A stretch of 64,000 nucleotides of DNA from Macrostomum lignano (GCA_002269645.1 NIVC01001837.1:1-64000); one strand, 5' to 3'; shown: positions 5,033-64,000, numbered from the stretch's first letter. Notes: generated from the sequence alone by a model not told the origin. Numbers and translations: made by a program.

Positions 5033-6853
5033 ATGTCAGACACAGAAGAGAGCATATGCGTCGATCAAGTCAATGCTGCTGCAGAGGCCCCCACGCTAGC
5101 AGAATTTAATAAAAACAGTAGCAGCGGCCCAATGCCAATGGACCTGAAAGTGCTGCCTGATGACAGCAAGCTGCGCCTGCGCACCGAGTCCGAGCCGGGA
5201 CAAGGCGATGATAATGACGGAGAGGGCGAAATCCATAACAAAAAGCACGATGACAGAGCCGACGAAGGGGCCGACGGTGACATTGATGACGAAGACGACG
5301 GGCCGAGTCATTATCGGAGGCTGGACGGCGCTGTAGACAACAACGCGGCTCTAGCCGACGAGGACAAATCGACGTCCAGCCCTTGCTCGGTGCCGGATTC
5401 CGCCGTCGGCTGCCGCGACCGCGACCTGCACTCGCTGGAGATCGAGCGGGCCTGCATGGAGTCGCAGGGCGAGGTCAACGTCAAATGGGACATCACGCGA
5501 AAGAACAAAACCAGCATAGTGATCAACGGCTATAAGATGACGGAGAGTCGGGCTGGCAAGGACGGCCGGATATTCTGGCGCTGCAGCAAGCGCTTCTGCT
5601 CGGCCACGGCCATCAGCCTCGGCCAGCGGCTGCTGTCCGTACGCCAGGTGGACGAAGCCCGATTTCATAATCATCCGCCGACTGGCCGAGAGGAATTCTT
5701 TCGAGGCGACTTCAGCACGCCGGGAACATCGACCAGCGTCACCGTCAAGTGGCCGGTGCTGCGCGCCTCTTCAGCTAGAGGATCGGCGACGGCGCAGATT
5801 CCAAAGTCGGCGTCGAAGGCAGCGGCGGCGTCAGGTGGTCCGGACGAGCTGCAGTACGCTGACGGAATGGTTCAGGCATCGCAGGCCGACGAAGCCCTTC
5901 CTGCAGCGGCGGCGGCAGCCGCTTCGATGGCAGCAGCCACGGCGGCGATGCTGCCCTCCTCGCAGGCGCAGACGGTCTCTTCGCTGCTGGCAGCTGCGGG
6001 TGCATCGCAGCTGCACCTGGGACAGCAGCAGCAGCAGCACTATCAGCAGCAGCAACTCCAGCAGCACCTGTATAACAGCGCCAAGCGAATGCGCCACGGC
6101 TCAATTGAAAGCGGCGGCAGCAGCACCGGCACCTCCGAGGCCGCCCTGTCCGACCCACTGTGCGCCAGCCAGCAGCGCCAGCAGCTCGGCCAGCTGAGGG
6201 CGGCATCCGGCGGCCTGGTGCCATCAAGCGCCGCCGCCGCCGCCGATGTGCACAAATCATTTTTATCGCTGGCCTCGAGCTTGGGCCTACCCTATTCTGG
6301 CCTGTTTCCCAATTCGCTTCCAACGGAGCCCATTGCTCCACACCAGCAGCACCAGCAGCAACTGCATCGGCTGCAGCACCAGCACCAGCACCAGCAGCAC
6401 CAGCAGCAACTGCATCGGCTGCAGCACCAGCACCAGCACCAGCAGCAGCAGCAGCACAGTTACCAACCAAATGGCAGCAATATGCAGACTATCAAGTCGT
6501 ATCACTCGATATTTAATCCGCCACAGCCAATGCCGATGCTGCACCAGTCGCCGAGGCATCATCAGCAGCCGCTGCCACCGCCGCAGCCGCCGGCTGAAGC
6601 CACAGCCTCGCCGCTGAAGGAGGCCCTATCCCAGGTGGATAACTTCCAGCTGCAGCGCCAGCTCAGACGACTGGACGGCTATTTCCGGTCGGGCATTGTT
6701 GCCCTGACGGACACGCTCACGGGGCACCAGGGCGCCGCAGCTGCCGCCAATGACGCCGATTTTGTAGCCTGGGAGCGGGACAGCATGACCCGCCTGTTCG
6801 CCTACATGGATGGCCTTGAACGGGTACAGAAGCTGGCCAGTGACCTGCCGTAG
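5033..6853 (+). CDS. FLYWCH-type zinc-finger protein with polyQ/polyH/polyA tracts (606 aa, single exon)
   Basis: Uninterrupted GC-rich ORF; motif INGYKMTESRAGKDGRIFWRCSKRFCSATA...FHNHPP fits the FLYWCH W-x-C..C..H-x-H pattern; acidic N-terminus and Q/H-rich middle. Confidence 0.85.
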   Translation: MSDTEESICVDQVNAAAEAPTLAEFNKNSSSGPMPMDLKVLPDDSKLRLRTESEPGQGDDNDGEGEIHNKKHDDRADEGADGDIDDEDDGPSHYRRLDGAVDNNAALADEDKSTSSPCSVPDSAVGCRDRDLHSLEIERACMESQGEVNVKWDITRKNKTSIVINGYKMTESRAGKDGRIFWRCSKRFCSATAISLGQRLLSVRQVDEARFHNHPPTGREEFFRGDFSTPGTSTSVTVKWPVLRASSARGSATAQIPKSASKAAAASGGPDELQYADGMVQASQADEALPAAAAAAASMAAATAAMLPSSQAQTVSSLLAAAGASQLHLGQQQQQHYQQQQLQQHLYNSAKRMRHGSIESGGSSTGTSEAALSDPLCASQQRQQLGQLRAASGGLVPSSAAAAADVHKSFLSLASSLGLPYSGLFPNSLPTEPIAPHQQHQQQLHRLQHQHQHQQHQQQLHRLQHQHQHQQQQQHSYQPNGSNMQTIKSYHSIFNPPQPMPMLHQSPRHHQQPLPPPQPPAEATASPLKEALSQVDNFQLQRQLRRLDGYFRSGIVALTDTLTGHQGAAAAANDADFVAWERDSMTRLFAYMDGLERVQKLASDLP

Positions 6854-11332: not shown

Positions 11333-14300
11333 TTAGACAGCTTTGCAGTGATCGGCCGGCCAGTCGTACGGCTCGGGCACAATGTCTGGGTAATCTGTCC
11401 GGTACACTCGGTCGCTGATGTAGGCCGGCAGGTCAGGAGGAGCCTGGCCAATACCGGCTAGTCCGTGGCGCAGGGCGTGCTCAGCTACTTTGACGGCGAT
11501 CTCCAGACTGACTGCCTGAATGTCAGCCAGAGGCGGGTACAGGCGGCCCTCGGCCAGGTGCTGGTCGGTGACCAGGCCGGCTAGGGTCTGCGCGGCGCGG
11601 AGGAACACCTTGTCCGTGATTGGCCGGATTCCGCAGGCCACGATGGCCAGGGCTACGCCAGGAAAGATGTAGGCATTGTTGCCCTGGCCCGGGTAGAGCA
11701 CAGTGCCATTGTCCAGCTTCACTGGGCCGAATGGCGAGCCTGCGGCGGGTGCGGCGCTTTGGCTGATTAGCATTTTGACACATAAATATGAAGGGTGGAA
11801 GCCGAGGGGCTGGAGAGGCTGGCAGCTGAGGCACTGGGAGAGGAGAGGCTGGCAGCTGAGGCACTGGGAGAGGAGAGGCTGGCAGCTGAGGCACTGGGAG
11901 AGTAGGGGCTGGCAGTTGAGGCACTGGGAGAGGAGGTTAATCAGAATAAAAGTGCAGAGCGTCAGGCACAGACCGGAGGCGAAGATGGCACGGCCGCCGG
12001 TGTGCTTGTAGGCCTCTTCGGCGGTGCACTCGGCCTGGGAGGTCGGGTTGCTCAACGCGAACACGATGGGGCGATCGTTGAGCTGCCCCATCTCCTGCAG
12101 CAGCTCGGGTGTGAAGGTGCCAGGCACTGCCGCGGCGCCAATGATGCCAGTGGGCTTGACAAGGCGCACGCACTCCAGCAGGCTCGGCGTGTCCGGCAGG
12201 TCCTTGGCGAACTCCTGCTTGTGGCCGGACAGCCCCGACCGCGTCTTGGTGATCAGACCCTGCCAGGGTTGTCGGGCTGACTCAGTCACTGCTCTAACTC
12301 GTAGTAACACTTCTCTACCTGGGAGTGACACTTCTCTACCTGGGAGTGACACTTCTCTACCTAGCAGTGACACTTCTCTACCTGGGAGTGACACTTCTCT
12401 ACCTGGGAGTGACACTTTTCTACCTGGCAGTGACACTTTTCTACCTGGGAGTGACACTTCTCTACCTGGCAGTGACACTTTTCTACCTGGGAGTGACACT
12501 TTTCTACCTGGGAGTGACACTTCTCTACCTGGCAGTGACACTTCTCTACCTGGGAGTGACACTTCTCTCACTGAGAGTGACACTTTTCTAACTGGGAGTG
12601 ACACTTCTCTAACTGAGAGTGACACCTCTCTAACTGGGAGTGACTCTTCTCTAACTGGGAGTGACTCTTCTCTAACTGGGAGTGACACTTCTCTAATTCG
12701 AAAGGACTTTTCTAATTCGTAGTCACACGTCTCTAAGTCGGAGTGAAACTACTCTAATTCGGAGTGACGCCTCTAATTCGGAGTCCAATTCCGAAGATCG
12801 GAGTGAGTGACACAAAAATTCAAGGTCAGCGACAATTTTCCAAAGAATACCCAGACTATACAAAACAACAGCAACATCAAAACAAAGTATGCTCACCTTG
12901 CTATCCACCATAAAAATCTTCTTAAGTCCCTCCTCCCTCTGCATGCCCTCCTCCTGCATTGCCTCCAGAATGAGCTTGGCGATGCCAATGTTGGCCTCCC
13001 CGGCGCCCTGGAACAGGAACACGTTGTCCGAAACGCGCTTCTTGGTCAATCGGACAGCGGCCAGCAGGCCGGCCACGGCCACCGAAGCCGTGCCTGCGGA
13101 TTTCGGAAGGGTGGCAACAGGTGCTGAGCTGCATTCTACCGTCTCTCCCTGCATTCCATGGTCTCCATCTGTATTCTATCGTCTCTCCCTGCATTCTATC
13201 GTCTCTCCCTGCATTCCATCGTCTCCATCTGTATTCTACCGTCTCTCCCTGCATTCTACCGTCTCTCCCTGCATTCTACCGTCTCTCCCTGCATTCTACC
13301 GTCTCTCCCTGCATTCCATCGTCTCCATCTGTATTCTACCGTCTCTCCCTGCATTCCATCGTCTCCATCTGTATTCTACCGTCTCTCCCTGCATTCTACC
13401 GTCTCTCCCTGCATTCTACCGTCTTTCCCTGCATTCTACCGCCTCTCCCTGCATTCTACCGTCTCTCCCTGCATTCTACCGTCTCTCCCTGCATTCTACC
13501 GTCTTTCCCTGCATTCTACCGTCTCTCCCTGCATTCTACCGTCTCTCCCTGCATTCTACCGTCTCTCCCTGCATTCTACCGTCTTTCCCTGCATTCTACC
13601 GTCTCTCCCTGCATTCCATCGTCTCCCTCTGTATTCTATCGTCTCTCCCTGCATTCTACCGTCTCTCCCTGCATTCTACCGTCTTTCCCTGCATTCTACC
13701 GTCTCTCCCTGCATCCCATCGTCTCCCTCTGTATTCTATCGTCTCTCCCTGCATTCTACCGTCTCTCCCTGCATTCTACCGTCTCTCCCTGCATTCTACC
13801 GTCTCTCCCTGCATTCTACCGTCTCTACCTGCATTCCATCGTCTCCCTCAGTATTCTATCGTCTCTCCCTGCATTCTACCGTCTCTCCCTGCATTCTACC
13901 GTCTCTCCCTGCATTCTACCGTCTCTCCCTGCATTCTACCGTCTCTCCCTGCATTCTACCGTCTCTCCCTGCATTCTACCGTCTTTCACTGCATTCTACC
14001 GTCTCTCACTGCATTCCATCGTCTCCCTCAGTATTCTATCGTCTCTCCCTGCATTCTACCGTCTCTCCCTGCATTCCATCGTCTCCCTCAGTATTCTATC
14101 GTCTTCCTCTGCATTCTACCGTCTCTCCCTGCATTCCATCGTCTCCCTCAGTATTCTATCGTCTCTCCCTGCATTCTACCGCCTCTCCCTGCATTCCATC
14201 GTCTCCCTCTGTATTCTATCGTCTTCCTCTGCATTCTACCGTCTCTACCTGCATTCCATCGTCTCCCTCAGTATTCTATCGTCTCTCCCTGCATTCTACC

Positions 14301-17300
14301 GTCTCTCCCTGCATTCTACCGTCTCTCCCTGCATTCTACCGTCTCTCCCTGCATTCCATCGTCTCCCTCTGTATTCTATCGTCTTCCTCTGCATTCTACC
14401 GTCTCTACCTGCATTCCATCGTCTCCCTCTGTATTCTATCGTCTCTCCCTGCATTCTACCGTATCTACCTGCATTCCATCGTCTCCCTCAGTATTATATC
14501 GTCTCTCCCTGCATTCTACCGTCTCTCCCTGCATTCTACCGTCTCTCCCTGCATTCCATCGTCTCCCTCTGTATTCTATCGTCTTCCTCTGCATTCTACC
14601 GTCTCTCACTGCATTCTACCGTCTCTCACTGCATTCTACCGTCTCTCACTGCATTCTACCGTCTCTCACTGCATTCTACCGTCTCTACCTGCATTCCATC
14701 GTCTCCCTCTGTATTCTATCGTCTCTCCCTGCATTCTACCGTATCTACCTGCATTCCATCGTCTCCCTCAGTATTATATCGTCTCTCCCTGCATTCTACC
14801 GTCTCTCCCTGCATTCTACCGTCTCTCCCTGCATTCCATCGTCTCCCTCTGTATTCTATCGTCTTCCTCTGCATTCTACCGTCTCTCACTGCATTCTACC
14901 GTCTCTCACTGCATTCTACCGTCTCTCACTGCATTCTACCGTCTCTCCCTGCATTCTACCGTCTTTCCCTGCATTCTACCGTCTCTCCCTGCATTCCATC
15001 GTCTCCCTCTGTATTCTATCGTCTCTCCCTGCATTCTACCGTCTCTCCCTGCATTCTACCGTCTTTCCCTGCATTCTACCGTCTCTCCCTGCATTCCATC
15101 GTCTCCCTCTGTATTCTATCGTCTCTCCCTGCATTCTACCGTCTCTCCCTGCATTCTACCGTCTCTCCCTGCATTCTACCGTCTCTCCCTGCATTCTACC
15201 GTCTCTACCTGCATTCCATCGTCTCCCTCAGTATTCTATCGTCTCTCCCTGCATTCTACCGTCTCTCCCTGCATTCTACCGTCTCTACCTGCATTCCATC
15301 GTCTCCCTCAGTATTCTATCGTCTCTCCCTGCATTCTACCGTCTCTCCCTGCATTCTACCGTCTCTCCCTGCATTCTACCGTCTCTCCCTGCATTCTACC
15401 GTCTCTCCCTGCATTCTACCGTCTCTCCCTGCATTCTACCGTCTCTCACTGCATTCTACCGTCTCTCACTGCATTCCATCGTCTCCCTCAGTATTCTATC
15501 GTCTCTCCCTGCATTCTACCGTCTCTCCCTGCATTCCATCGTCTCCCTCAGTATTCTATCGTCTTCCTCTGCATTCTACCGTCTCTCCCTGCATTCCATC
15601 GTCTCCCTCAGTATTCTATCGTCTCTCCCTGCATTCTACCGCCTCTCCCTGCATTCCATCGTCTCCCTCTGTATTCTATCGTCTTCCTCTGCATTCTACC
15701 GTCTCTACCTGCATTCCATCGTCTCCCTCAGTATTCTATCGTCTCTCCCTGCATTCTACCGTCTCTCCCTGCATTCTACCGTCTCTCCCTGCATTCTACC
15801 GTCTCTCCCTGCATTCCATCGTCTCCCTCTGTATTCTATCGTCTTCCTCTGCATTCTACCGTCTCTACCTGCATTCCATCGTCTCCCTCTGTATTCTATC
15901 GTCTCTCCCTGCATTCTACCGTATCTACCTGCATTCCATCGTCTCCCTCAGTATTATATCGTCTCTCCCTGCATTCTACCGTCTCTCCCTGCATTCTACC
16001 GTCTCTCCCTGCATTCCATCGTCTCCCTCTGTATTCTATCGTCTTCCTCTGCATTCTACCGTCTCTCACTGCATTCTACCGTCTCTCACTGCATTCTACC
16101 GTCTCTCACTGCATTCTACCGTCTCTCCCTGCATTCTACCGTCTCTCCCTGCATTCTACCGTCTCTCACTGCATTCTATCGTCTCTCACTGCATTCTACC
16201 GTCTCTCACTGCATTCTATCGTCTCTCACTGCATTCTACCGTCTCTCACTGCATTCTACCGTCTCTCACTGCATTCTATCGTCTCTCCCTGCATTCTACT
16301 GCGTCTCACCCTTAACACTATCGTCTTGCCAACAGTTTTATCTACTCACTCAGCCTTTATTCGATTGTAGCACCCTTTATTCTACCATACATCCTTCGTT
16401 CATTCTATCTCTTATTCTAGCTTTCATTCTAGCCATCATTCTACCCCCTCATCCTAGCCCCTTGAATCGCCCGAGCACTGAATCCTGGATCCCAGCCGTC
16501 AGCGGACCAGCCATGCCCTCACCCTGGATGTCATCGTTGAACACGCAATAGTCGTAGCGGTACTTCTCCAAGAATCTGAACGCATTGGCGTTGCCGAAAT
16601 CCTCGAACTGCACGAGGCAGCTGCGGCCGTAGGTCCTCACCACGGCTTGCATGAAGGCGTCAATGAATTCATCGTACTCGGCGCCGCGGACCCTCGGCAT
16701 GCGCAGGCCGCTGTACATGGAGTCGCTGACCAGCTCTTTGCGGTTGCAGCCAACGTCCAGCGCGATGGGCAGGCAGTTGCTGGGGTTGACGCCGGCCAGG
16801 GCCGTATACAGGCTGAGCTTGCCAACCGGGATGCCCATGCCGTTCGTGCCCAGATCGCCCAGGCCAAGGATTCGCTCGCCGTCTGTCACCACGATGGCGC
16901 GGATGTCGTTCTCCGGCCAGTTGCGCAGAATTTTATCGATGTTGTCCTTGTCGAATATGGTGATGTACAGCCCGCTGCGGGTTGCGGTGCATTGGGGCCT
17001 CAAGGCCGATAGGAAATACCCTCTCATCTGGAAATACCTTCCTATATAGGAGATAGTAGATACCCTCCGTTATGGGAACTACCCCCCGGTGTGGGAAATA
17101 CCCTTCGATTTGAGAAATATCTTCCGGTATGAAAAATTCCCTTCGATCTGGGAACTGCCCTCCGTTCTGAAAAATACCCTCCGGTATGGGAAATACCCTC
17201 CGACATGGGAAATACCCTTTGATTAGGTAAATACCCTTTGATTAGGTAAATACCCTTCGATATGAAAAATACCCTCTGACGTGGGAAATACCCTCCGATG

Positions 17301-17803
17301 GATTAGAGAAACGAATAGGAGAGACACAGAGTCACAGTGAAAGCAACAGATTCAGACAAATATCCTAGTAGCTCAACTAACCGCGGCCGGCGAAAGATGT
17401 GGCCGAACTTCTGGCAGGCGAGGCCAACGGTGGGCGTGTAAATGAGCGGCATGGCCTCTTCAACGCTCTCGGACAGGTAACGATAGAACAGCCGCTCGTT
17501 CCTGTCCTGCAGAGACATCAAGTAGATGTACTTATTCAGCGGATCCTCGTAGCGCTGCAGGTTGTAGCGAATGCGCTCCAGCTGGCTCTCCTGGGTCTTC
17601 ACTGAGGGCGGCAGCAGGCCGTGGATGTTGAGCACCTGGCGCTCGCGCAGAGTGAAGGCCTGGCCGCGGTTGGTGCGCGGGTCTCGCAGCACGTCGATGC
17701 CGCGGGCCCGCCTGGCCAGGCTGGCGAACGGGTCGTGGGTGGCGGATTTTCGGCCGGGGCCGCTGAGTGCGCGCCGGCTCAGGTGGCTGACAATGGACTG
17801 CAT
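11333..17803 (-). CDS. ME1: NADP-dependent malic enzyme (ME1/ME3-like), 5 coding exons, 587 aa
   Basis: Exons 17382-17803, 16523-16974, 12897-13093, 11974-12259, 11333-11739; all GT-AG and phase-compatible (1764 nt). Motifs [47 protein letters not shown] (NADP-type), [19 protein letters not shown]. Basic/Ser-rich N-terminus may be a mitochondrial presequence, so ME1 versus ME3 orthology is not resolved. Confidence 0.95.
11810..11935. repeat. 30-bp repeat x4 in malic enzyme intron 4
   Basis: GAGAGGCTGGCAGCTGAGGCACTGGGAGAG-like units. Confidence 0.9.
12305..12810. repeat. 21-bp minisatellite in malic enzyme intron 3
   Basis: GACACTTCTCTACCTGGGAGT units grading into CTCTAATTCGGAGTGA-like variants. 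Confidence 0.93.
13130..16300. repeat. 3.2-kb 20-bp minisatellite in malic enzyme intron 2
   Basis: About 158 in-phase units of GCATTCTACCGTCTCTCCCT and variants; explains the >1000-aa + strand ORFs. Confidence 0.98.
17005..17305. repeat. Degenerate ~21-bp repeat in malic enzyme intron 1
   Basis: Recurrent GGAAATACCCT(C/T)CG motif. Confidence 0.8.
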
Positions 17804-18302
17804 TACTGCACTGCTGCTGCTGCGGGCTGCAGGCGATTCTAGGCAGGTAAGCCAGGCGAGCTGTCTATATTTGAAAAGTACATTTACAAATGGTACCTTA
17901 CTATAGTATTGGCAATAATATTTGCATGAAGGCTGCGGGTCAGCGCCAATATTGTACGCAGGCACACACTCCTACACACGCTCACGCAAGATGTACAGTG
18001 GCCCGAACTTTCTAATACAAGGCTTCTAATAATAAGGCTTCTAATTTCTAATAAAGGCAAGGTTAAGATCCCAATACCTAATCTTAATCTTATCCTAAGA
18101 TCTTAGATATAATTGGCTACAACTCTCTATTTTGGCCAAGAGTCAAACTGTGCTAGATACTAGATAGTTTTCAAGATTTAAAAGCATACTAGACACTAAA
18201 ATAGCCTAACTGATAAGTATATGGTATACACTTATCAGCCTATAGTTAGGCCTATGCCAAGCATTTTTTCTATGCCAAAGATTGCTACCTATTGAAACAA
18301 TG

Positions 18303-20674: not shown

Positions 20675-21319
20675 ATGCGTGCGGCAAAGCTCATTCTAGT
20701 GGCCATAGTGCCAATCGCTCTGTGCCTGCAGCTGCAGCGAGTGCTCCTGTCTGCTCAGCCTGCCATTAATGAGGCGCTGCTTCACACCGTGGCCAGGAAG
20801 CACGCGGTGCAGCTGCTCAGCATCGAGCGGGCCTACAAAGCTGTGGTGACCGATCTTGAGGCCACTTTCCCAGCTGTAAGATTCCTGCATCCGGAGCGGC
20901 GAGAATGGATCTTCATCAACGCTGGAGGCTGGATGGGGGCCGTACACCTGTTGTACGCCTCCTTCACCGAGTACGTGCTGCTGTTTGGCACCGCTGTGGA
21001 CACCAGCGGCCACTCCGGACGCTACTTTGCCAACGTGTCCGACACGCTTCTGTCCGGCAGCTTCGTCCAGTGGAAGGAGGGCAGTTTGGACACGAACAGC
21101 TACAAGGCTGGGGACACCGTGTACCACACTTGGGGCGAGGCCACTGCTGTACAGTGGTCTGGCGGCACCTGGATGGTCGAATATGGCCGCGGCCTGCTGC
21201 CAACCACCCTGCCGTTTGCGCTGGCTGACTCTGTGTTTTCCACTCTCGACTGGTACTCTGCTTATAAGCTTGTGCGGCTGTACTGCTTGGCACTGCTACG
21301 TTGCTATGGGCTGATGTAG
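20675..21319 (+). CDS. SIGMAR1: Sigma-1 receptor / ERG2 family protein (214 aa, intronless)
   Basis: N-terminal hydrophobic helix; WIFINAGGWMG, YASFTEYVLLFGTA, GHSGRY..VSDT, WMVEYGRG (ligand-binding Glu), LPFALADSVFSTLD match the family. Confidence 0.95.
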   Translation: MRAAKLILVAIVPIALCLQLQRVLLSAQPAINEALLHTVARKHAVQLLSIERAYKAVVTDLEATFPAVRFLHPERREWIFINAGGWMGAVHLLYASFTEYVLLFGTAVDTSGHSGRYFANVSDTLLSGSFVQWKEGSLDTNSYKAGDTVYHTWGEATAVQWSGGTWMVEYGRGLLPTTLPFALADSVFSTLDWYSAYKLVRLYCLALLRCYGLM

Positions 21320-25670: not shown

Positions 25671-26284
25671 GCCCATTCATATCAGCGCCTTCGGCAATAT
25701 CGTTGCACAAACAGTGCTGAGACAACTCTACTTATTCCACTGACTCCTGAACATCGACCCCGGCTCTCTAATCGTTAGGCATGTACACTACTCTGGTTAG
25801 GATTAAGGTCAGCACATACCCCGATGACTTCTCCGATACAAATATGAAGAATAAATTTATGACCAGCATCGAAGCTGCCATCAATGCATAATAAAACAAA
25901 TTCAAAGCCGCGCACGAAATCCCAATCTATGACCTCTAGCAGCGCTGCAGCAGTTCCCGAATGTACACACCGATTGCATTATACGATCGCCGCGGATTAT
26001 CTTTATATCCGCCTGAACTGCATCGATGTTGCGAAGCCGCAAAACCTGCTGCTGCTGCTGATTTAATCAGATTTCGTTCGCCCCCGCCACACCGCCGCCT
26101 CGCCCTCGCGTCCCTGTCCCAAAAGTTGAAAGTCTCCCCCCTTCCCGGTCGCCGAGACATCTGCATGCGACTGGAGCCCGGAGCGTGTTAAACTATGGCG
26201 CTGCCCGCCACTCCCGGCTCAGCACTAATATAGCCTACAGCCAGTATATTCCTGTTGTAGGTATTTTTTTTTATTTGAGGCAGG

Positions 26285-26624
26285 GGGTTTGTGTGCACCC
26301 TGGCGCACTTTAAGCGACATTGGCACACAACCGGCGAGAGGCATTACTGCCCATTCCGCCGACTCCCCTGAGCAGGCACACAAGCGCGCGGATACGTACG
26401 CAGGCACACACTCACACAGGAGTGTACAGCGGCCCTAACTTTATATTATCGTTAGGCATGTACACTTCACTGCGCCTTGGGGGGTTGGCTCTCAAGGCCG
26501 TTAATTGCACGAGCAGAGCCAAGCCGAGATTCCAATTCAGCCCCAAATTAATGTGACTGCACTTGGAATCGAGCCTGGGTCGCTGGCACACCAGAGCCTG
26601 CGCTACCGCTGGGCTATGGCCCCC
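26285..26624 (-). mobile_element. tRNA-derived SINE, family 2
   Basis: Minus-strand head GGGGCCATAGCCCAGCGG (A box) ... GGCTCGATTCC (B box-like); body recurs at ~35250-35540 and ~59641-59998, with a fragment near 17955-18010. Confidence 0.75.
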
Positions 26625-33482: not shown

Positions 33483-44596
<11,114 letters not shown>

Positions 44597-45295: not shown

Positions 45296-46797
<1,502 letters not shown>

Positions 46798-51290: not shown

Positions 51291-51615
51291 ACTCTCCAGG
51301 AGCCGAGGCCGTTTTGCTTTTAGACATCAGTTCTCATTTCTGCGACTCCGGTGAGTCTATCGTGTTTTTTATTTTATTTTTTATCCGTGCGAAATTATTA
51401 ATAACATCCAGGCCAAATTGATTCTAGATAGGAAGCTTAGTTAGGGTTTGGGGCCAACGCCAAGCAAATATTGAAGGGTGGCGTCTCAGTCAGCTCAACC
51501 TAATCATCTGCCTGTGCGATGATGGCGTGACCCATTCTAAGACTGTGAGTCTTGTTTCAGACTACGTCTACGATTCTTCCCATCTCCCCTTTCCTATTGC
51601 AGTCCGCATTCGAAA

Positions 51616-52152
51616 ATGTACGGCAACCAGCCTTACCCGCAACCGGGCGCCCAGCCTCCGCCGTACGGTGGCGGCGGTGGCAGCGGCAAGCCGGCCCAGG
51701 TGTGCCTGAGCTGGGTGCCGGCCTCCAACGGTCAGGTCCCGCCCAGGGCGGTGCAGGTGGGCACCCAGAGCGACGGCTCGCCAGTGTACGTCAGCCGGGC
51801 CCGCCACGGCAACGAGCTGATCCCGGCCAAGCTGGTGCAGGGCCACGGCCACGTCTGCCTGCCCTACGGCGGCAAGGAGCACCTTGTGCAGCAGTACGAG
51901 GTGCTGTGCGACTCCGGCATGCCCTGCTTCGGCTGCGGCTGGGCCTGGGCCCCCTGCCAGGGCTTCAACGTGCCGCCAAACGCCATCATTGGCGGACACA
52001 CTGACAGGAACGAACCCCTTTACATCGGCAAGGGATTTGTTAATGGCGACGCGGCTGCCGGCAAGGTCTATAGTCCGCATCAGTGCGCCTACTTCAGCTG
52101 GGGCGGCGCTGAGCACTCTAGCAAGCAGTTTGAGATCCTTGTGGCCATGTGA
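51616..52152 (+). CDS. DM9-repeat (DUF3421-like) lectin-like protein, 178 aa
   Basis: Two DM9 repeats (WVPASNGQVPPRAVQVG..SPVYVSRARHGNELIPAK..YGGKEH...YEVL; W...VPPNAIIGG..EPLYIGKG..AAAGKV..WGGAEH...FEILV); P/G/Q/Y-rich N-terminal tail; no signal peptide. Confidence 0.9.
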   Translation: MYGNQPYPQPGAQPPPYGGGGGSGKPAQVCLSWVPASNGQVPPRAVQVGTQSDGSPVYVSRARHGNELIPAKLVQGHGHVCLPYGGKEHLVQQYEVLCDSGMPCFGCGWAWAPCQGFNVPPNAIIGGHTDRNEPLYIGKGFVNGDAAAGKVYSPHQCAYFSWGGAEHSSKQFEILVAM

Positions 52153-53078
52153 ACTCAATTACTGATTATTCTAATACAGACTCTTGTCAGTTGTCACTGA
52201 GAGGCCTATGTTGTTAAGCCGTTTGTTTTTTGTCAAATTTGTGGTCAATTTTCCCTCGTTTGCGTGGATTTTTGTTGGTCATCGAAAAACCTATTATACG
52301 TAGATGTGTCTTCTGTGTTAATTTTCTAGCTAATCTCTTTTTCTATGTTCAGCTGTTCGCGACTCTAACTACACTTTTTAACACAGTACTGGCTCATTCC
52401 GACTGAAAACCACCGGCCAAGTGCGCAAAGGGCAGTGCGGCTCTTTCTCATATTATTTTATCCTTGATGGCCCGCCCTGTTTATTCTCTCTGGAGCTCTG
52501 CTCCCATACTGAAATATCATTCAGCTGTCTGAGCTATTTCTCTTAATACTGCACAGTCTTGGTTAATAATCTACAGAGATGAATTCCTTTGCTCGAAGGA
52601 GGTGCCACCAAACTGGTTTGTCACTGGCCTCTATAGTTGCATAGTAGATCTAGAAAGAACTGGCCAGCTTGTATGCTATTGAGCACCTTGAGTACACTTG
52701 ATGAGCTAGCAGAGATGAGGCTTGAGTTGACTAGGCTAAACGCTTCGCTATTGTGTTCGAAACTGACCGAGTACAGTCAGTCATTCCAGAGAACTAGCAG
52801 GATGAGTCAGCTGGACTCTAGCGCGATTTCTGCCTACTTTGTTATACTAGCAATCCAGTGCTGTGACCATGACAACTATTTTAGCGGTATCTAGTTGTAA
52901 AGGTCTACCTCAATAAAAATTTTACTATAGCTGAGGACTCGCGTTGCGACCTCTGGTTCGATTCCGTGCGCGTCATTTTAAATTAGAAATCAGAAATTGA
53001 CTTAAGGGGCTTGTGCGATTCACAATGAGGGCCCCATGATGGCACCTGGCTCAGTGTACAGTATGTGTTACATGTACA

Positions 53079-55430: not shown

Positions 55431-56307
55431 AAGTTCGTAAGCTCAAAACACCCTTTTCATGAGAACCGAGAGTGGCAGCTTTAATCCAGCTCTGTCATAA
55501 CTCTTCACTCTCTTCTCACCAGCCCAAGCCAGGGCCTTGCGATGCAAAACTGCATCACCCAACAGTTGAGACGAGAACCGCGGGCGATTGCAAAAACTTG
55601 AGGCTGAGACCTGGGAAAAGTTGACCGCTTGTTTGACCACTGTAGAAAATCTGACATGTTGCTGCAGAATGAGCGAGCGCACTGCCTGTAGTTGCACACA
55701 AACTCGTGACACATTTACGTATAGATAAAGTTTGCTAACCACTATAGGGACTGCACCGAATTGACATCTCTGTACGAAGCTTCGAGCGTATTTGTCAATT
55801 ATTCCGTCATAGACCCCTATAGGCCTACTTGTAGTAATAAGAAGAATGGGTTCGAGTGGGGCATGGCAAATTATGGCTGGCTGTTCCAAATTTGCCGCTG
55901 ATAGCAGACAATTTTGCTTGTGAAATTCTGCTTTAAATTTAATAACTATAGTAGACGATTAGAGATTTAGTATATTTAGATTAGAATTAGAGTTCATATT
56001 CAGATTTGGATAGAGAAACAGTTCAGCTTTCAAATTGAAGCAACATTCATAAATTAATTAGGGATACAATCTGGTCTTACTACGAGACAATTGAACGCAT
56101 TGGCAACAGAGACCGCTAAAAAAGTTCAAACTTCTGCAGGAGATTTTGTTTCATGCGGCTTCACTAATAAAATCTATTGATTAATCACACAGGCTCAATA
56201 TTATATTATTAGCATATAACTAAGTAAATCAGTAAGCACAGCAGCTCCTCTGGTGGCGTCTTCGACTGTGCCTGGTAGCTTCCAGCTTTCGGCTTTCACT
56301 TCGCAAC

Positions 56308-58807
56308 TCAGGCACAGCTGCCAAAGCGTTTCTTCCAGAACAGCAGCAGGCCGCTGTCGCTCAGCGAGTTGCCGCCCGACTCGCCCCTGCAGCCGACGCC
56401 GGAGCAGAAGGAGCCGCCGCCGCCGCCGGCCTGCGGATACCAGCTACCGGCTCCGCCGCCGCTGAAGCCGCCGCCGCCTCCGGCAGCGCCGCTTTGATGG
56501 CTGCCGCCTCCGCCTCCACCGAAGCCTCCGACAGCGCCCTCGTTGCCGTGTCCGGCGACGCCGCCGACCCAGCCCTGGCTGATGCCCCCTCCGCGATCGC
56601 CGTAGCAGGTTCTGATCCTGGAGATGGCGACTCCCAGCCAGCCGGCTCCCAGGCCGCCCTTGTATGTCCTTGTAGACGGTCCGTAGCTCCCGGGCTGCCC
56701 GTTCGCACCGCCGTAGCCGACGTAGGAAGCCGTGCCGACAGAGTCGGTTCCGTTTGGACCAGCCGATCCGTTCACGCCTGCGTTGAGGCCACAAAGATAG
56801 CAAAGATCGGAGCTGTGAGTCACCTAAATGCACTACGGTGATCACCATTAAAAGTACTTTAGAATCGTTGGTATCGTTAGAAGTGAAATCACGTTAGAGG
56901 TATCATGTTATTCTTAATTCATAGCCTGTATCTGAATTTATACCCTTGTATCCGATGGAGCCACCGCCGCCTCCGCCGGCAGCCAGGTACAGCAGGTTGT
57001 CCGAGCTCCGGTACACGAAGGTGCCGCCGCCGCCGCCAGAAGCTGCGTGGTTGTAACTTTGAGTCGCGTTGCCGCCCCGCTGTCCGATCACCAGGCTGAG
57101 CTGCGTTCCCGCCGTCAGGTTGAAGCTGCCTCCGATGCGGGCGCCGAATCCGCCAGTGTAGACGGGACTGAAGGCCGGGTTGGAGCTGCCGCCTCTGGCT
57201 CCGAGCGCCTCCATGCGGTAGCAGCCGGTCTCGTTCACCGTCAGGGTCTGGATGGAGCCGGTCCTGCCCGAGCTGCTGTCTGGAATGCGGGTCAACTCCT
57301 CTGTGAGCTCCGGTGTCGCTGTGCGATCAAAACTCACACACAAAAAGTTCAGCAGAGGTCTCACTTCTATAGACGATGACGGCTTTGCTCAGATTGAAAT
57401 TTTCTGACACAAGGACCTCCTCGTCCCGTGTGGCTTTGAATTCGTTTTCGATGTCGCACTCCATGATCTTCGCATACAACGCAGGAATCGCGAACCACCG
57501 AACCATTCGACAGACTCCGTCCTTGAAGGCCACAGCCGAGAAGCCGGAGCTGCTGGCCCTCACGGCGCACTCGGTGCTGCTGCGAATGTCCCGGAGAGTG
57601 TGCACTGACTTGCAAACGTTCTTCTCCACCTCGAGCTTGAAGGCGGCTGAGCCAGTTGGCGCTTTCGTCAGATGAAAAGCCTCACCGGAGCTCGGGGCTG
57701 AGCCGATGAGTCCTGGAACAGTTCAGAGCGGAACTGAATGGAGGAGCTGGTCAGTTAATGAATGGTGAAGTCATGAGTCCTGGAACAGTTCAGAGCAGAA
57801 CTGAATGGAGGAGCTGGTCAGTTAATGAGTGGTGAAGTCATGAGTCCTGGAACAGTTCAAAGCGGAACTGAATGGAGGAGCTGGTCAGTTAATGAGTGGT
57901 GAAGTCATGAGTCCTGGAACAGTTCAGAGCGGAACAGAATGGAGGAGCTGGTCAGTTAATGAGTGGTGAAGTCATGAGTCCTGGAACAGTTCAGAGCGGA
58001 ACTGAATGGAGGAGCTGGTCAGTTAATGAGTGGTGAAGTCATGAGTCCTGGAACAGTTCAGAGCGGGACTGAATGGAGGAGCTGGTCAGTTAATGAGTGG
58101 TGAAGTCATGAGTCCTGGAACAGTTCAGAGCAGAACTGAATGGAGGAGCTGGTCAGTTAATGAGTGGTGAAGTCATGAGTCCTGGAACAGTTCAGAGCGG
58201 AACTGAATGGAGGAGCTGGTCAGTTAATGAGTGGTGAAGTCATGAGTCCTGGAACAGTTCAGAGCGGAACAGAATGGAGGAGCTGGTCAGTTAATGAGTG
58301 GTGAAGTCATGAGTCCTGGAACAGTTCAGAGCGGAACAGAATGGAGGAGCTGGTCAGTTAATGAGTGGTGAAGTCATGAGTCCTGGAACAGTTCAGAGCG
58401 GGACTGAATGGAGGAGCTGGTCAGTTAATGAGTGGTGAAGTCATGAGTCCTGGAACAGTTCAGAGCAGAACTGAATGGAGGAGCTGGTCAGTTAATGAGT
58501 GGTGATGTCATGAGTCCTGGAACAGTTCAGAGCGGAACTGAATGGAGGAGCTGGTCAGTTAATGAGTGGTGAAGTCATGAGTCCTGGAACAGTTCAGAGC
58601 GGGACTGAATGGAGGAGCTGGTCAGTTAATGAGTGGTGAAGTCATGAGTCCTGGAACAGTTCAGAGCGGAACTGAATGGAGGAGCTGGTGCGACTGCATG
58701 CAGGCCGAGCGCTGATTATGAGCAATCTGTCGGGGGTAGCAAACGATAGAAGCAGAACTCTTACCTATTAAAAGCAGAGCAAAATGCAGTTGCATAACAG
58801 AGACCAT
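56308..58807 (-). CDS. Secreted PAN/apple-like + ALK/LTK-type glycine-rich domain protein, paralogue A (4 exons, 398 aa)
   Basis: Exons 58765-58807, 57365-57712, 56944-57279, 56308-56777; all phase 1, GT-AG, 1197 nt. Signal-peptide-like MVSVMQLHFALLLIGLIGSAPSSG; QTLTV..TGCYRMEALGARGG..F.L..G..L...IGQRG..GGGGGTFVY..LLYLAAGGGGG resembles the ALK TNF-like/GlyR region; no TM helix or kinase. Confidence 0.82.
57706..58688. repeat. 67-bp minisatellite containing the exon-2 splice acceptor of paralogue A
   Basis: ATGAGTCCTGGAAC recurs every 67 bp from 57706 to 58644 (15 copies). Confidence 0.98.
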
Positions 58808-59640
58808 GTTCACTAGTTGCAGGAACAGAGTTTGGAACTGAGGCTTGGGACAGCAGGCGTATTTCAAGACAACGAGCCGAAGCTTTATTTAAACAGGCAG
58901 CCGGTTTAGCAACCGTTGCCATTGTCAACAAGCAGTGATTCCTTCTCGCGGATTGGCAGCAGTTACCTGCAAACTTCAGCTGTCCAGGTGTGGACACTGC
59001 AGGTACTTCAGTTCTGACAGCGAGTTTTAGGCAAGTGGTGTCAGTCTTTGCTAGTTAAGATGCAGCCCGCGTAAACAAAACGAACTCTTGCATACCTCAG
59101 CTTCTCTGCATGCTTCATCAATCTGTCCATCAACTGGGCAGCTCCCTACCCAGAAAGTGCTTTGTCAAGCAAGCATTTATCGATTTCTTACACGCGTCAC
59201 GTGTATCTCCAGTCTAGTTTTCGCCAGAAATAAGATTTGCAAATTTGAAGTTGCGATTCTTCAAGAATTTTCCTCAAACATTCACGGCCCCGCGAAACAG
59301 GTGCATGGAGTCTGAAGACGCTGTCACGGTGCTTCGGGGGGGGGGCTTGTCAAATCTGCTGTGTAATGCAGCTTGACGAGGCACTCAATGTCGATGAAAA
59401 TGGACAGGACTTGGTGGTAAGAAATCTTGTTTTTGTCGAATAAGAATTTCGAACTGCTGGAGAGAGAACCCCGCAAACTACTTCAAGTAGCTTAATGACC
59501 TCAATCGCGCATACAGTAGCTACATGTAAAACATGTGAACGTCTCGTACTGTTCTGCCCAACTACTGAATGCATGGCGCTTCGACGCAAACTTTCAGTGT
59601 GCTTGTTCGTTTTATCATCGGTGTTGCAGAAGCAGGTAGG

Positions 59641-59998
59641 GCCTTTGTGCACCCTATGGCGCACTTTAAGCGACATTGTCACACAACCGGCGAGAGGCAT
59701 TACTGCCCATTCCGCCGACTCCCCTGAGCAGGCACACAAGCGCGCGGATACGTACGCAGTCATACGCACAGGCACACGCTCACACAGGAGTGTACAGCGG
59801 CCCTAAGTTTATCTATCGTTAGGCATGTACACTTCACTGTGCCTTAGGGGTTGGGCCTCAAGGCCGTTAATTGCACGAGCGGAGCCAAGCCGAGATTCCA
59901 ATTTAAACCCCAAAAAATTAATGTGACTGCACTGGCAATCGAGCCTGGGCCGCTGGCACTAAAAGCGCCGCGTCAGACCACTGGGCTACGGCCCCCCC
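59641..59998 (-). mobile_element. tRNA-derived SINE, family 2
   Basis: Highly similar to 26285-26624; head GGCCGTAGCCCAGTGG...GGCTCGATTGCC on the minus strand. Confidence 0.75.
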
Positions 59999-60795
59999 TC
60001 TGTCATCGTCAGTTATGCTTAGACGAAACGCGGTGGCATTCAATAAACTCGTGTTTAATTCCGTAAGCATTTTTTACCAAAACAGGAAATTCTCTGACAA
60101 ACAAAAAACTGGTTCTTTGACAAAGCTGAAATAAGTTTAATAAGTTACTGCAGCAGCCTTCAGTAAAACGTACAGTTTATATGCAAGTGCTATTCTAAAG
60201 TTTTAAAGAAAATAATTCAACAGTTTATTGCCACAAGGGAAAATATTTTGTTGACAAAAGAGTGGGATCAGATTTCGAAAATACGATCCGTAGAAACAAC
60301 AAGCAAAATTTTAAATATGAACACAGAATTTAATAAATAGTAGAAGTGTTATTAAAATATTATTAAAAATGATAGCATTAGGTTGGCTGAAACCTAATTT
60401 GAAAAATAAGTTTGCGTAATTTGATAACTGAAGGTTTACAGTTTATCATAGAGTATAAAGCAAGGAACGTATATCGTATGCCAAAGCGTATCGTATGTCA
60501 ATAAATATTAACAAGAGAAAAGCCATATTTGATATTAAGTTTTTTTAAACATTAAAAACAGGAACAAAAACATCTCATCAGCTTCAGTAGAGAACACAGC
60601 ATAAATTTTAATCCGTCACGTTAGAACTCGCAAAAGCTTTTTGAAAATAAAAATCCATCTGCTATTCAGTGTCCGCAAAGGTCAGTCAAAAACACGTGTT
60701 GGTCGAAACCTGTCCTAATCTCAAACGCCAAGTTGTCAGAGTCATCCAAACCACAAAATTTTGTCTTTTTGCCTCCAGTAGAAGGCATGGCCGGC

Positions 60796-62212
60796 TCAGG
60801 CGCAGCTGCCAGGGCGGATCAGGCCGAACAGCAGCAGGCCGCTGTCGCTCAGCGAGTTGCCGCCCGACTCGCCGCTGCAGCCGACGCCGGAGCAGAAGGA
60901 GCCGCCGCCGCCGCCGGCCTGCGGATACCAGCTACCGGCAGCGCCGCCGCTGAAGCCGCCACCGCCTCCGGCAGCGCCGCTTTGATGGCTGCCGCCTCCG
61001 CCTCCACCGAAGCCTCCGACAGCGCCCTCGTTGCCGTGTCCGGCGACGCCGCCGACCCAGCCCTGGCTGATGCCGCCTCCGCGATCGCCGTAGCAGGTTC
61101 TGGTCCTGGAGATGGCCACTCCCAGCCAGCCGGCTCCCAGGCCGCCCTTGTATGTCCTTGTAGACGGTCCGTAGCTCCCGGGCTGCCCGTTCGCACCGCC
61201 GTAGCCGACGTAGGAAGCCGTGCCGACCGAGTCGGTTCCGTTTGGACCAGCCGATCCGTTCACGCCTGCGTTGAGGCCACAAAGATAGCAAAGATCGGAG
61301 CTGTGAGTCACCTAAATGCACTACGGTGATCACCATTAAAAGTACTTTAGAATCGTTGGTATCGTTAGAAGTGAAATCACGTTAGAAGTATCATGTTATT
61401 CTTAATTCATAGCCTGTATCTGAATTTATACCTTTGTATCCGATGGAGCCACCGCCGCCTCCGCCAGCAGCCAGGTACAGCAAGTTGTCCGAGCTCCGGT
61501 ACACGAAGGTGCCGCCGCCGCCGCCAGAAGCGGCGTGGTTGTAACTTTGAGTGGCGTCGCCGCCCCGCTGTCCGATCACCAGGCTGAGCTGCGTTCCCGC
61601 CGTCAGGTTGAAGCTGCCTCCGATGCGGGCGCCGAATCCGCCGGTGTAGACGGGGCTGAAGGCCGGGTTGGAGCTGCCGCCTCTGGCTCCGAGCGCCTCC
61701 ATGCGGTAGCAGCCGGTCTCGTTCACCGTCAGGGTCTGGATGGAGCCGGTCCGGCCCGAGCTGCTGTCTGGAATGCGAAGCAGTATGCCGTAATAAGCAA
61801 ATCTTTGAGGAAGTCTTATATCTCATTGAAATCTGAGCATTAGAAGGCAACTGCTCACTTCTATATGTATTATAGGTGATGTTCCACAGGATGTTGATCT
61901 TCTGTGAAACAAAGACCATTTCACCGCTGGTGCCATTGAAGGTTGTGTTGCATTCCGGCCTGGCCAGACGGAACAGCACAGGCTCAACATGAACAGTCCT
62001 GCAGACGCCGTCCTTGAACGCCGCAGCTGCACAGCCTGAGCTGCTGCACCGGAAAAGGCACTCAACGCTGCTGCGGATGCCCTGCAGAACTTCCACAGTC
62101 TTGCAGCTGTTCGTCCCCTGCCCCACGGTAACGACCGAGCCAGTGAGCGACTGTGCCAGACGAAAAACTTCGCTTAAATTTGCCTCTTCGGCTGCTAACG
62201 GGCAGACGAGAC
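60796..62212 (-). CDS. PAN/apple-like + ALK/LTK-type glycine-rich protein, paralogue B (first exon not found)
   Basis: Exons 61859-62212, 61432-61767, 60796-61265 with the same phases as paralogue A; PAN-like C-x3-C-x4-C-x9-C; no in-frame start/signal exon found before the Gypsy element, so possibly disrupted. Confidence 0.75.
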
Positions 62213-62340
62213 CTGGAAGTGTTTTTAGAGCAATGATACCGCTTTTGCAGAAATCATTCGTACGCTCGTAATGTTTTATTCCTTGCCTTAGAGGCAAACT
62301 CGTAGATATTGCTGAATCATTGTCGCTTTAAATATAGGAA

Positions 62341-64000
62341 TGTACATCTCGATCTATATGTACATTGATGTCAATAAATATATCGTTCGCTGCCCCGCAG
62401 GGTTTTCGTGTTTTTGATCTCACACTGCCAAATACCGCGTGTCACAAGTGGTAGCAGAGCTCAGAATGGCAGAGGGCAGCCACCGCGCGATTCCAAGAAC
62501 TTTTGGCGCTCTGGCAACTTTAATGAGTGGCTGCAGCGGTTTGAGCTGTGTGCAGCAGCCAACAAGTGGACAAATGACAAACACCTGCATCTGCCAACGT
62601 TTCTGGATGGCGAGGCTCTGGTGGCCTTCCTTGAGCTCAGCGACAAGGACAGAGCGACTACAGTCAGGTGACCAAAGACAGCACGACTCCGCCAAGATGG
62701 TCCGACAACAGACTGCGACACCTCAGCCGCATCTGGCGGAAGTTGCGAATTCAAGACGGCCTTCTCTGCCCGGCCTTCAACGACGCTGCAAGACCGAGGG
62801 AGGTTCCCGTGATTCCGGAGTTGCTGCGGCGCCAGTTCCTGACCGACATTCACGAGGGCATCGGCGGTCATTTCGGACCGGAGAAAATGGCCGACACGCT
62901 GAAGCAGACCGCGAGTTTCTGCCAGGAGTGCCAGACCTGCCAGCTGAAAAAGGCGCAGCGCCGGCCCGCAGCCCCTCTCGGTGAGATGCCGATCGGCAAG
63001 CCCTGGCAGACGGTGGCGATCGATGTGCTGAAGGTGCCGACATCGGACCGAGGCAACAGCTACCTACTGGTGATGCAGGACCAGTTCTCCAAGTTCCTGA
63101 CCGCCGTGCCGATGCCAGATCCGACCGCCAAAACCATCGCGGACGCTGCAGTGAAAGTCTTCTCTCTGCTCGGAGTCCCGTCCGTCATCCACTCGGACCA
63201 GGGCGCGAACTTCGAGAGCGAGCTGTTCCAGGAGACGCTGAAAACACTGGGCATCAAGAAGATGCGCATTACGCCGTACCATCCGCAGGGAAATGGACTG
63301 GTGGAACGCGGCAACAAGTCGCTGCTGCAGCTGCTGAGGCTGTTCGCCGAGACTGAGTCCAGCTGGGAGGAGCAGCTGCTGCTGGTGGTCCTGTCCTACA
63401 ACTACAGGGTCCACAGCTCAACCAATGTGGCGCCGCTGACGGTGATGACCGGCCGCGACCCGCAGCTCTCGCCGGAGGTGCAGAGCAGCGAGCAGCAGTT
63501 CGACATCGGCACCTACTCAGCACTGCTGGAGCGGCGGCTGGCCCGGATCCGCGAGTTCATCGAGAAGAACCTGGTAGCCGCCGGGCAGCAGCAGAAGGCC
63601 GCTCACAACAAGAAGGCGGCGGACCTGCCGCAGTTCCCGCAAGGTGCCAAGGTGCTGCTCAGCATCGAAATGCGGCGCTCAAAGTCGGCGCCCTACTGGG
63701 AGCCGGGCTGGACGGTGCTTGAGCAGCGCGGTCACTCGGTGTGCATCCGCCGCGCCTTCGGCAGCCGGCCGGTCCGCTGGGTGCACGTGAACCGGCTGCG
63801 CAAGCGGTTCGCAGCCCAGCCCGACTCTGACCAGCTCCGCCAGCAGCCGGTGACCCACCAGGTCGCGCCGGAGACCAGCCAGACCGAGCGGCGGTACCCG
63901 GCCAGGCAGCGGCGGCCTCCGGACTTCTTTGGCGTGAGCACTGAGTGAGAGACAGAGACCGGTGTGGACTGTTCTTTTATTGCATCTGTTGTAGCTGGTT
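62341..64000 (+). mobile_element. Internally deleted Ty3/Gypsy LTR retrotransposon (LTR end, PBS, gag fragment, integrase)
   Basis: Putative LTR end ...TCACA at 62446 with AATAAA at 62373; PBS TGGTAGCAGAG at 62449-62459; frameshifted gag start (ATG 62466; NFNEWLQRFELCAAANKW); no PR/RT/RNase H before the integrase; LTR start and 3' LTR not seen. Confidence 0.85.
62668..63948 (+). pseudogene. Gypsy-type integrase ORF (H2C2 + rve DDE core), N-terminally truncated pol remnant
   Basis: IHEGIGGHFG..CQECQTCQ, PWQTVAIDVL, GNSYLLVMQDQFSKF, IHSDQGANFES, TPYHPQGNGLVER; about 10 residues (the usual YWP segment) appear missing from the H2C2 finger. Confidence 0.9.

Follow-up and report, generated by a model that had tools for sequence, protein, structure and literature searches.

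A 64,000-nt stretch of DNA from Macrostomum lignano (the 64-kb window; all positions given here are window coordinates) was found to contain two intact paralogous genes whose products carry the ligand-binding module of the receptors ALK and LTK without a kinase. The genes, A and B, lie on the minus strand between 56308 and 62212 and have GT-AG introns. Each product consists of a cysteine-rich N-domain of ~115 aa followed by a 268-aa ALK/LTK-type TNF-like and glycine-rich (TG) module. We are highly confident of the architecture and identity of the proteins as described below. The best explanation overall, which we consider fairly probable, is that they are secreted extracellular binding, recognition, or adhesion proteins that join a PAN-like domain to the TG module. 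The functional part of this explanation, which is drawn by analogy with relatives, is plausible but more tentative.

The TG module was assigned using a family profile of 122 members, including both window proteins, which was searched against 177,635 PDB sequences. The only matches were ALK (E 1.2e-10), C. elegans SCD-2 (2e-8), and LTK (4.6e-5), and the aligned region takes in the non-glycine TNF-like strands besides the glycine runs. The module of the window proteins is ~31% glycine and is shared over its whole length with the TG supradomain of the ALK/LTK ectodomain (PDB 7N00, 7NWZ, 7NX0, and 7LS0; SCD-2, 7LIR; Pfam PF12810). ALK residues 707-965 were rebuilt from the profile-search alignment and compared with the 14 experimentally defined polyproline-II (PPII) segments of ALK (PMC13243192, Table 1). 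Between 12 and 14 of the 14 segments align to Gly-rich motifs in both window proteins (GARGG, GQRGG, GGGGG, AAGGGGGG, GFGGGGGG, and similar), so that the order of the Gly runs parallels that of the PPII helices in ALK. The N-terminal strands are conserved as well (GxIQxxxVxxTGxYxIxAxGAxGG), whereas the helical insert of ALK (~residues 785-812) is absent. In both genes, the stop codon follows 13 residues past the last strand of the module, GLLLF, which is the counterpart of the last TNF-like strand in coral proteins (GLVQIFEL) and in ALK. When the single window proteins were searched against the PDB with phmmer, no ALK chain was found, and the nanobody matches that appeared in this search were dismissed as spurious.

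The fold was examined with the M. lignano paralogue P0002, whose TG module is 57% identical to that of the window proteins. Its AlphaFold model has a predicted local distance difference test (pLDDT) score of 81-96 across the TG module and includes long stretches, modelled with confidence, that form no helix or strand. In a Foldseek comparison of this model with the PDB, the top 21 matches were all ALK/LTK TG domains (E 7.8e-12 to 1.7e-6), with target-normalised TM scores of 0.39-0.65 for the 21 and 0.48-0.65 for the 19 ALK/LTK chains. The next match, a cyanophage tail fibre, had an E of 0.03. The original prediction held that the C-terminal ~270 aa follow the ALK/LTK TNF-like plus glycine-rich pattern, with its polyglycine-II fold. 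Profile homology, the fold match of the modelled paralogue, and the alignment of the PPII segments all bear this out, and the C-terminal module is firmly concluded to be a complete ALK/LTK TNF-like plus glycine-rich domain and a member of the TG family. In the two studies of PPII bundles cited here, only ALK and LTK are listed for this fold, and the polyglycine-II honeycomb is treated as a rarity, confined to two receptor kinases and a few unrelated proteins (bioRxiv 10.1101/2023.11.25.568672; PMC13243192).

The gene A product starts with the leader MVSVMQLHFALLLIGLIGSA|PSS, which resembles the n, h, and c regions of a signal peptide and has a small-x-small site (GSA|P). In a Kyte-Doolittle plot with 19-residue windows, this protein peaks at 1.88 over residues 1-19 and stays at or below 0.9 everywhere else. 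Leaders are also present at the start of full-length homologues. This putative signal peptide suggests that at least the gene A product enters the secretory pathway. The gene A product has 7-9 NxS/T sites, and neither protein has a hydrophobic segment besides the gene A leader. A hydropathy scan of the window proteins accordingly gave no transmembrane (TM) segment, and a regular-expression search for kinase motifs in all six frames of the 64 kb found none. No EGF-like module was seen either; Pfam returns only a weak PF12810 match for the window proteins. The long open reading frames (ORFs) that were scanned upstream in the window encode malic enzyme, a protein resembling the sigma-1 receptor, and a FLYWCH protein; a single ORF was scanned between these and the locus (51568-52158, minus strand), and it has no Pfam match.

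The ends of related proteins agree with those of the window genes. Gene B ends ...GLLLFGLIRPGSCA and the annotated M. lignano protein A0A1I8I3H6 (P0269) ends ...GLLLFGLIRYGSCA, two nearly identical termini. P0269 and the coral and jellyfish homologues all terminate at the equivalent point, directly after the TG module. The gene of the coral Porites harrisoni has three exons (PAN, linker, and the whole TG module), and no other gene is called within 10 kb of it in either direction. The proposal that these proteins lack both TM and kinase parts therefore stands. ALK/LTK receptors have MAM, LDLa, EGF-like, TM, and kinase parts, and the window proteins have none of these; instead, a PAN-like domain precedes the module and the product is predicted to be secreted rather than membrane-bound. 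Since there is no TM helix and no kinase, the window proteins cannot signal as receptors. Their module belongs to the ALK/LTK TG family, but they are not ALK/LTK receptors.

Receptor paralogues that consist of a secreted ectodomain alone often serve as traps. The window proteins could, in the same way, tune ALK signalling as soluble decoys or co-receptors for a Jeb/HEN-1-like LDLa protein, which would be the ligand of an ALK-type receptor in the flatworm itself, as was originally suggested for ALK ligands. Homology between the TG module of the window proteins and the part of ALK, LTK, and SCD-2 that binds the ligand indeed extends over the full module. Against this, the TG domain is not followed here by an EGF-like module as it is in ALK/LTK, the TG module is paired with many unrelated N-domains, corals and Macrostomum have dozens of copies, and the module is abundant in bacteria and phages, which have no ALK. 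Moreover, ALKAL/Augmentor has no homologues outside vertebrates, and the invertebrate ALK ligands are unrelated LDLa proteins (PMC10605310). Because of the vertebrate limit of ALKAL, the missing EGF-like module, and the frequency of the TG module in bacteria and phages, a decoy for ALK ligands is very improbable.

The N-domain is less conserved than the TG module. That of gene B has six cysteines (C37, C52, C56, C61, C71, and C88), which fall on the PAN_1 cysteines of the coral homologues in a MAFFT alignment; the coral and jellyfish homologues are themselves above the Pfam threshold for PAN_1 at the corresponding position. An AlphaFold model of gene B exon 2 has a mean pLDDT of 66, with a core at 88-92 (residues 35-77) of beta-alpha-beta-beta topology. 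Among the top 50 Foldseek matches of this model, 14 are PAN, apple, or WSC folds (best E 0.21), including Wsc1, HGF NK2, the Sarcocystis lectin SML-2, an Eimeria PAN module, Kremen, kallikrein, and factor XI A4. Compared with PAN/apple and WSC modules in general (the HGF N-domain, factor XI/prekallikrein apple domains, apicomplexan microneme PAN lectins, yeast Wsc1, and Kremen WSC), the window N-domain has the C-x3-C-x4/5-C...C core in common, on what is modelled as a helix that packs onto a beta-sheet. The cysteine scaffold, the model core, and the top fold matches thus agree with the PAN-like N-domain that had been proposed, while the E-values of these matches, given below, are not significant. 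We call the N-domain PAN/apple-like rather than a demonstrated member, because the cysteine and fold support is indirect and no match is significant.

The six cysteines of gene B fit the 1-6, 2-5, 3-4 scheme of apple domains, and paralogue A would lack the inner disulphide. Only C3 and C4 are missing from gene A, where the inner-cysteine motif is VRASSSGFSAVAF as opposed to FRCSSSGCAAAAF in gene B (RCSSSGC to RASSSGF); the other four domain cysteines are retained in both genes. The paired loss that had been noticed is real, and since three annotated M. lignano copies show the same four-cysteine state, it appears to be a stable state of a subfamily. A sequence search with the gene B N-domain alone found no homologue. 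A profile of seven N-domain sequences matches only M. lignano paralogues, all of them joined to a TG module and none of them annotated as PAN. UniProt labels P0002 and P0006 "Apple domain-containing", a label that was not reproduced here.

The gene models were built by hand from three reading frames and splice sites. The splice junctions of both genes are all canonical (AG|...|GT), there are no internal stops, and the frames are open across 1160-1197 nt in both copies. The original coordinates proved exact, running from the gene A stop codon TGA (56310-56308, minus strand) to the gene B exon-2 acceptor (62212). Both genes have only phase-1 introns (three), and the N-domain exon is symmetric (phase 1-1). 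This layout is classic for exon shuffling and fits the varied N-domains that precede the TG module in Macrostomum and coral paralogues.

Gene A (58807-56308, minus strand) has 4 exons and encodes 398 aa. A TATA-like element, TTTAAATA, may be present at 58886-58893 on the minus strand, 79 nt 5' of the ATG. Exon 1 (58765-58807) starts at the first ATG past an in-frame stop and encodes the start codon and putative signal peptide, MVSVMQLHFALLLI, then a G that is split by the phase-1 intron (donor AG|GTAAGA). Exon 2 (57365-57712, phase 1-1) encodes the PAN/apple-like N-domain with its 4 cysteines and the RASSSGF motif. The first half of the TG module is encoded by exon 3 (56944-57279), and the second half, with the stop, by exon 4 (56308-56777). 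An in-frame alternative acceptor for exon 3 is present at 57318, and the acceptor used in the model, 57279, agrees with gene B and with annotated P0269 (...YK|NSSSGRTG). Intron 1 (57713-58764, 1052 nt) is nearly filled by a 67-bp minisatellite (57706-58689; 14.7 copies and 97% matches by TRF) that overlaps the first 7 nt of exon 2. Every unit carries CTGTTCCAG|GACTCAT, which is the acceptor together with the first 7 nt of exon 2. Because each unit repeats the acceptor, intron 1 contains ~15 tandem cryptic 3' splice sites, and the use of any of them except the last would lead to a stop ~10 codons further on.

The gene B model runs from the exon-2 acceptor at 62212 to the stop at 60796 on the minus strand and encodes 386 aa without exon 1. 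Exon 2 (61859-62212) encodes the PAN/apple-like N-domain with six cysteines (C-x14-C-x3-C-x4-C-x9-C-x16-C), exon 3 (61432-61767) the first half of the TG module, and exon 4 (60796-61265) the second half and the stop (TGA 60798-60796). For the missing 5' end, nothing similar to gene A exon 1 or its upstream region was found. A retrotransposon fragment (62400-63950, plus strand) occupies the place where intron 1 or exon 1 of gene B would be expected. In its 426-aa ORF (62668-63948), Pfam finds an integrase core (rve, E 2.6e-15) and a zinc-binding domain of integrases (Integrase_H2C2, E 8.6e-06). An ORF of 87 aa in front of it gave no Pfam match; no protease or reverse transcriptase was seen in the window.

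The two copies differ greatly in how well their parts are conserved. Proteins A and B are 97% identical over the C-terminal 268 aa, while their N-domains are only ~40% identical. At the DNA level, a block of 983 bp (56307-57289 and 60795-61777) that spans exon 3, intron 3, and exon 4, from 10 nt upstream of exon 3 to the stop codon, aligns without gaps at 97.25% identity (blastn). Exon 3 of gene B lies within this block, outside of which the untranslated regions, other introns, and flanks are unalignable and exon 2 aligns at 71% over just 117 nt (blastn). Within the block, 13 codon differences are synonymous and 8 are non-synonymous, and half of the latter (4/8) fall in a patch at the C-terminal tail, which reads WKKRF in A and GLIRP in B. 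This patch holds nine nucleotide differences in 5 codons (56323-56337 versus 60811-60825); the rest of the block differs by ~2%. Since the gene B version agrees with annotated M. lignano P0269, the tail of A looks like a small replaced patch. The intron seemed to be more conserved than the exons (1/166 nt versus 26/806 nt); this difference is not significant once the tail patch is removed, and no claim is based on it. Judging from sequence comparison, these patterns suggest an old duplication followed by recent gene conversion, which made the TG exons alike again. The module would be under purifying selection, and the N-domain exon would have been free to diverge.

One or both loci might not be functional genes of the kind modelled: gene conversion could be keeping gene B alike although it is a pseudocopy truncated at its 5' end, or the real transcripts could differ from the models. 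The retrotransposon fragment directly upstream of gene B, whose exon 1 was not found, is consistent with this, as are the ~15 copies of the exon-2 acceptor in gene A intron 1. The exact spliced gene A product, the only one of the two that was looked up, is also absent from a collection of 15 billion proteins, and the nearest match to gene A in the homologue search is only 68% identical. On the other hand, both copies remain open over their 1160-1197 nt with canonical splice sites, gene B retains all six N-domain cysteines, and the differences between A and B are mostly synonymous. The annotated M. lignano models likewise start at exon 2, which indicates that exon 1 is easily missed by annotation. 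We consider it highly unlikely that one or both loci are non-functional in this sense; both window copies appear to be unannotated.

A homologue search returned 881 proteins, most of which carry a precomputed PF12810 match; E ranges from 3e-135 to 1e-38 among the best 120 of the 881. The best homologues are all from M. lignano. The closest group (P0001, P0268, and P0269) is 81-85% identical to the window proteins in the TG module and ~60% identical in the gene A N-domain (P0269, 61%), and identity in the TG module falls to 54-57% for Macrostomum P0002 and P0004 and for cnidarian proteins. About 20 M. lignano UniProt entries carry the TG module behind various N-domains. The names "Apple", "WSC", and "PPC" occur among them, as does "receptor protein-tyrosine kinase", which is given by rule. 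The PAN-TG order was also seen in the corals Porites, Acropora, Stylophora, and Pocillopora and in one jellyfish, Rhopilema esculentum, with PAN_1 and PF12810 both above the Pfam thresholds. The order of parts in these cnidarian proteins and M. lignano entries is identical to that in the window genes: signal peptide, PAN/apple domain, TG module, and stop. They differ in that the cnidarian homologues pass the Pfam PAN models, while the window N-domain is too divergent to do so and its relatives were detected only in Macrostomum. In addition, the TG module of Porites is a single exon and that of the window genes is split in two, and some coral proteins insert EGF or other modules, unlike the window genes.

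The original prediction did not recognise this architecture as a characterised family. It is in fact in public annotation already, since UniProt names the M. lignano paralogues and the coral and jellyfish proteins pass both Pfam thresholds, and the window genes are new paralogues of a catalogued, functionally undescribed family. A literature search found no paper that describes or tests kinase-less proteins with PAN and glycine-rich domains, and PF12810 was mentioned only in a fungal genome paper, with no function assigned. Several names given by rule to members of the family are misleading: "receptor protein-tyrosine kinase", "PE-PGRS family protein", "loricrin-like", and "putative lysozyme-like protein". 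On kinase-less TG proteins of flatworms, corals, and phages, such names are artefacts of the glycine-rich domain.

The TG module extends well beyond animals. With HMMER, 4033 of 1.84 billion cluster representatives matched at E <= 1e-3 and 795 at E <= 1e-10; the matching clusters are 74 to 6477 aa long, and in some the match is repeated in as many as 12 stretches. The domains that accompany the module in 57 representatives of middle length are the sorting tail of the type IX secretion system (T9SS; 6), EGF types (4), C-type lectin, PKD, LamG, and PAN. Viral proteins with the TG fold number 118 at E <= 1e-3, and the named matches among the top 50 of these include giant-virus "glycine-rich domain" proteins as well as tail-fibre, baseplate, and virion structural proteins of phages. 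Fold matches to viral proteins reach E 7e-17, one of them with a TM score of 0.65 and a root-mean-square deviation of 2.9 A over 285 columns. In bacteria, an ORF on an Alphaproteobacteria contig from a metagenome-assembled genome (CAVYXX010000110.1, 3001-3500) is clearly homologous and has the TG motif order GKLQTFTVPTTGTYDIVAEGAQGG ... GGGGGGSFVY ... AAGGGGGAG. This ORF runs off the end of the contig, and a transposase-like ORF lies upstream of it. Phage tail-fibre, virion, and baseplate proteins, giant-virus proteins, and T9SS-sorted bacterial proteins (Por_Secre_tail in 6/57 representatives) thus share the TG module with the window proteins, down to the motif order in the bacterial homologue. 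Their context is prokaryotic or viral, however, with no PAN domain and often with multiple copies or very great length, and their function is read from annotation names only.

Genes A and B are tandem paralogues of a multigene family, and we propose that each encodes a secreted protein of ~40 kDa with several putative N-glycosylation sites. The product would begin with a signal peptide, continue with a fast-evolving, disulphide-bonded PAN/apple-like domain, and end with the complete TG module, a TNF-like beta-sandwich predicted to bear a honeycomb of polyglycine-II helices. The rigid TG module could act as a binding head or scaffold, as it does in the ALK/LTK ectodomain and apparently in phage tail-fibre and virion proteins and bacterial surface proteins. 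A second specificity, for glycan or protein, would come from the variable N-domain and change rapidly. Binding or adhesion is suggested because the sole characterised role of the TG module is ligand binding in ALK/LTK, because its other contexts are adhesin-like, and because the family has expanded in particular lineages, with N-domains that vary on a scaffold that is conserved.

The main rival to this reading is a self-assembling material role. As a structural protein of mucus, rhabdite content, adhesive, or eggshell, the product would stack or polymerise through the flat glycine faces of the honeycomb and be cross-linked or anchored by the PAN-like domain. The glycine content of the module would suit such a role, as would the many near-identical M. 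lignano copies, which are typical of bulk secretory products, and the viral relatives, which are virion structural or fibre proteins. Glycine-rich segments are also predicted to dock onto polyglycine-II bundles (PMC13243192). In ALK/LTK, however, the TG module is a compact globular domain that does not form a fibre. The window proteins also have no repeats or low-complexity tails beyond the domain, and their mass of just ~40 kDa is small for a material of this kind. A material role is therefore considered unlikely, though it deserves more weight than the other alternatives.

Several results weigh against the reading of the products as secreted PAN-TG proteins that bind or adhere. Scored as single sequences, the window proteins reach only 14.1 and 11.7 bits with PF12810 (E 0.046 and 0.25), below the gathering score of 24.5. 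This shortfall probably reflects the correction for compositional (glycine) bias; the sub-threshold match still spans profile positions 6-203 of 243, and PF12810 is above threshold in the closest homologue, P0001 (26.8 bits), and in coral homologues (32-34 bits). The fold evidence for the TG module of the window comes by proxy, through the model of paralogue P0002. For the N-domain, Pfam gives no PAN match at E <= 10 in either protein, the comparison with coral PAN_1 domains by hhalign is in the right register but not significant (E 0.25), and the PAN fold matches of the model, at E 0.21 or above, are not statistically significant. No Met-initiated hydrophobic ORF with a phase-1 donor was found for gene B exon 1 in 62213-62420, and gene B may be 5'-truncated, with the retrotransposon fragment upstream. 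For the signal peptide that had been predicted before the PAN-like domain, the leader of gene A exon 1 is a candidate, and no counterpart for gene B was found in the window. With regard to function, the partner-domain statistics show an extracellular context and no specific ligand, and the literature search yielded no expression, localisation, or binding data for kinase-less members of the family.

A broader scenario can be drawn, although we think it distinctly unlikely. In it, the TG module would be a binding head of ancient origin, mobile and extracellular, that is common to phage tail fibres and to bacterial surface and animal secreted proteins, and ALK/LTK would have arisen when a secreted binder was fused to a kinase. 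The PAN-TG proteins of flatworms and cnidarians would then form a hitherto unrecognised class of soluble invertebrate proteins that recognise microbes or glycans, with N-domains diversifying under host-microbe pressure and gene conversion holding the TG scaffold constant. Apart from this scenario, the family shows that the whole ligand-binding module of ALK circulates widely without a kinase in flatworms, corals, a jellyfish, bacteria, and phages, where it is found joined to adhesion or lectin-type domains. The small secreted versions are tractable, and Macrostomum has working RNA interference and in situ methods. PAN-TG proteins could therefore be used to ask what the fold binds, why it has glycine helices, and how ALK gained its ectodomain. 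The gain from this window itself is modest, namely two new paralogues of a catalogued family.

The window as a whole is eukaryotic in character, with spliced genes, minisatellite arrays, and the retrotransposon fragment. There are ~30 minisatellite arrays with units of 13-67 bp, which result in many spurious long ORFs; (GTTA)n at 33581-34279 and (TCTA)n at 45634-46512 are further sources of these. A malic enzyme gene at 11333-17965 (minus strand) was recognised in three ORF pieces by its malic N-terminal and Malic_M domains (Pfam E 1e-60). The extreme GC and AT skew at 12-16 kb comes from 159 copies of a 20-bp unit, a 3.2-kb array (13129-16312) that fills one of the introns of this gene. At 20675-21319 (plus strand) is a single-ORF ERG2/sigma-1-receptor-like gene of 214 aa (E 1e-56), the exact sequence of which is absent from the 15-billion-protein collection, and at 5033-6853 (plus strand) is a 606-aa ORF with a FLYWCH zinc finger that is possibly derived from a transposon. 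Both ORFs are unrelated to the PAN-TG genes. Between genes A and B is an interspersed repeat of ~370 bp (59629-60007), part of which looks tRNA-like by eye; scans of it with ARAGORN and Rfam gave nothing. Further copies of this repeat are found at 26277-26624 and 35270-35548, with 82-86% identity.

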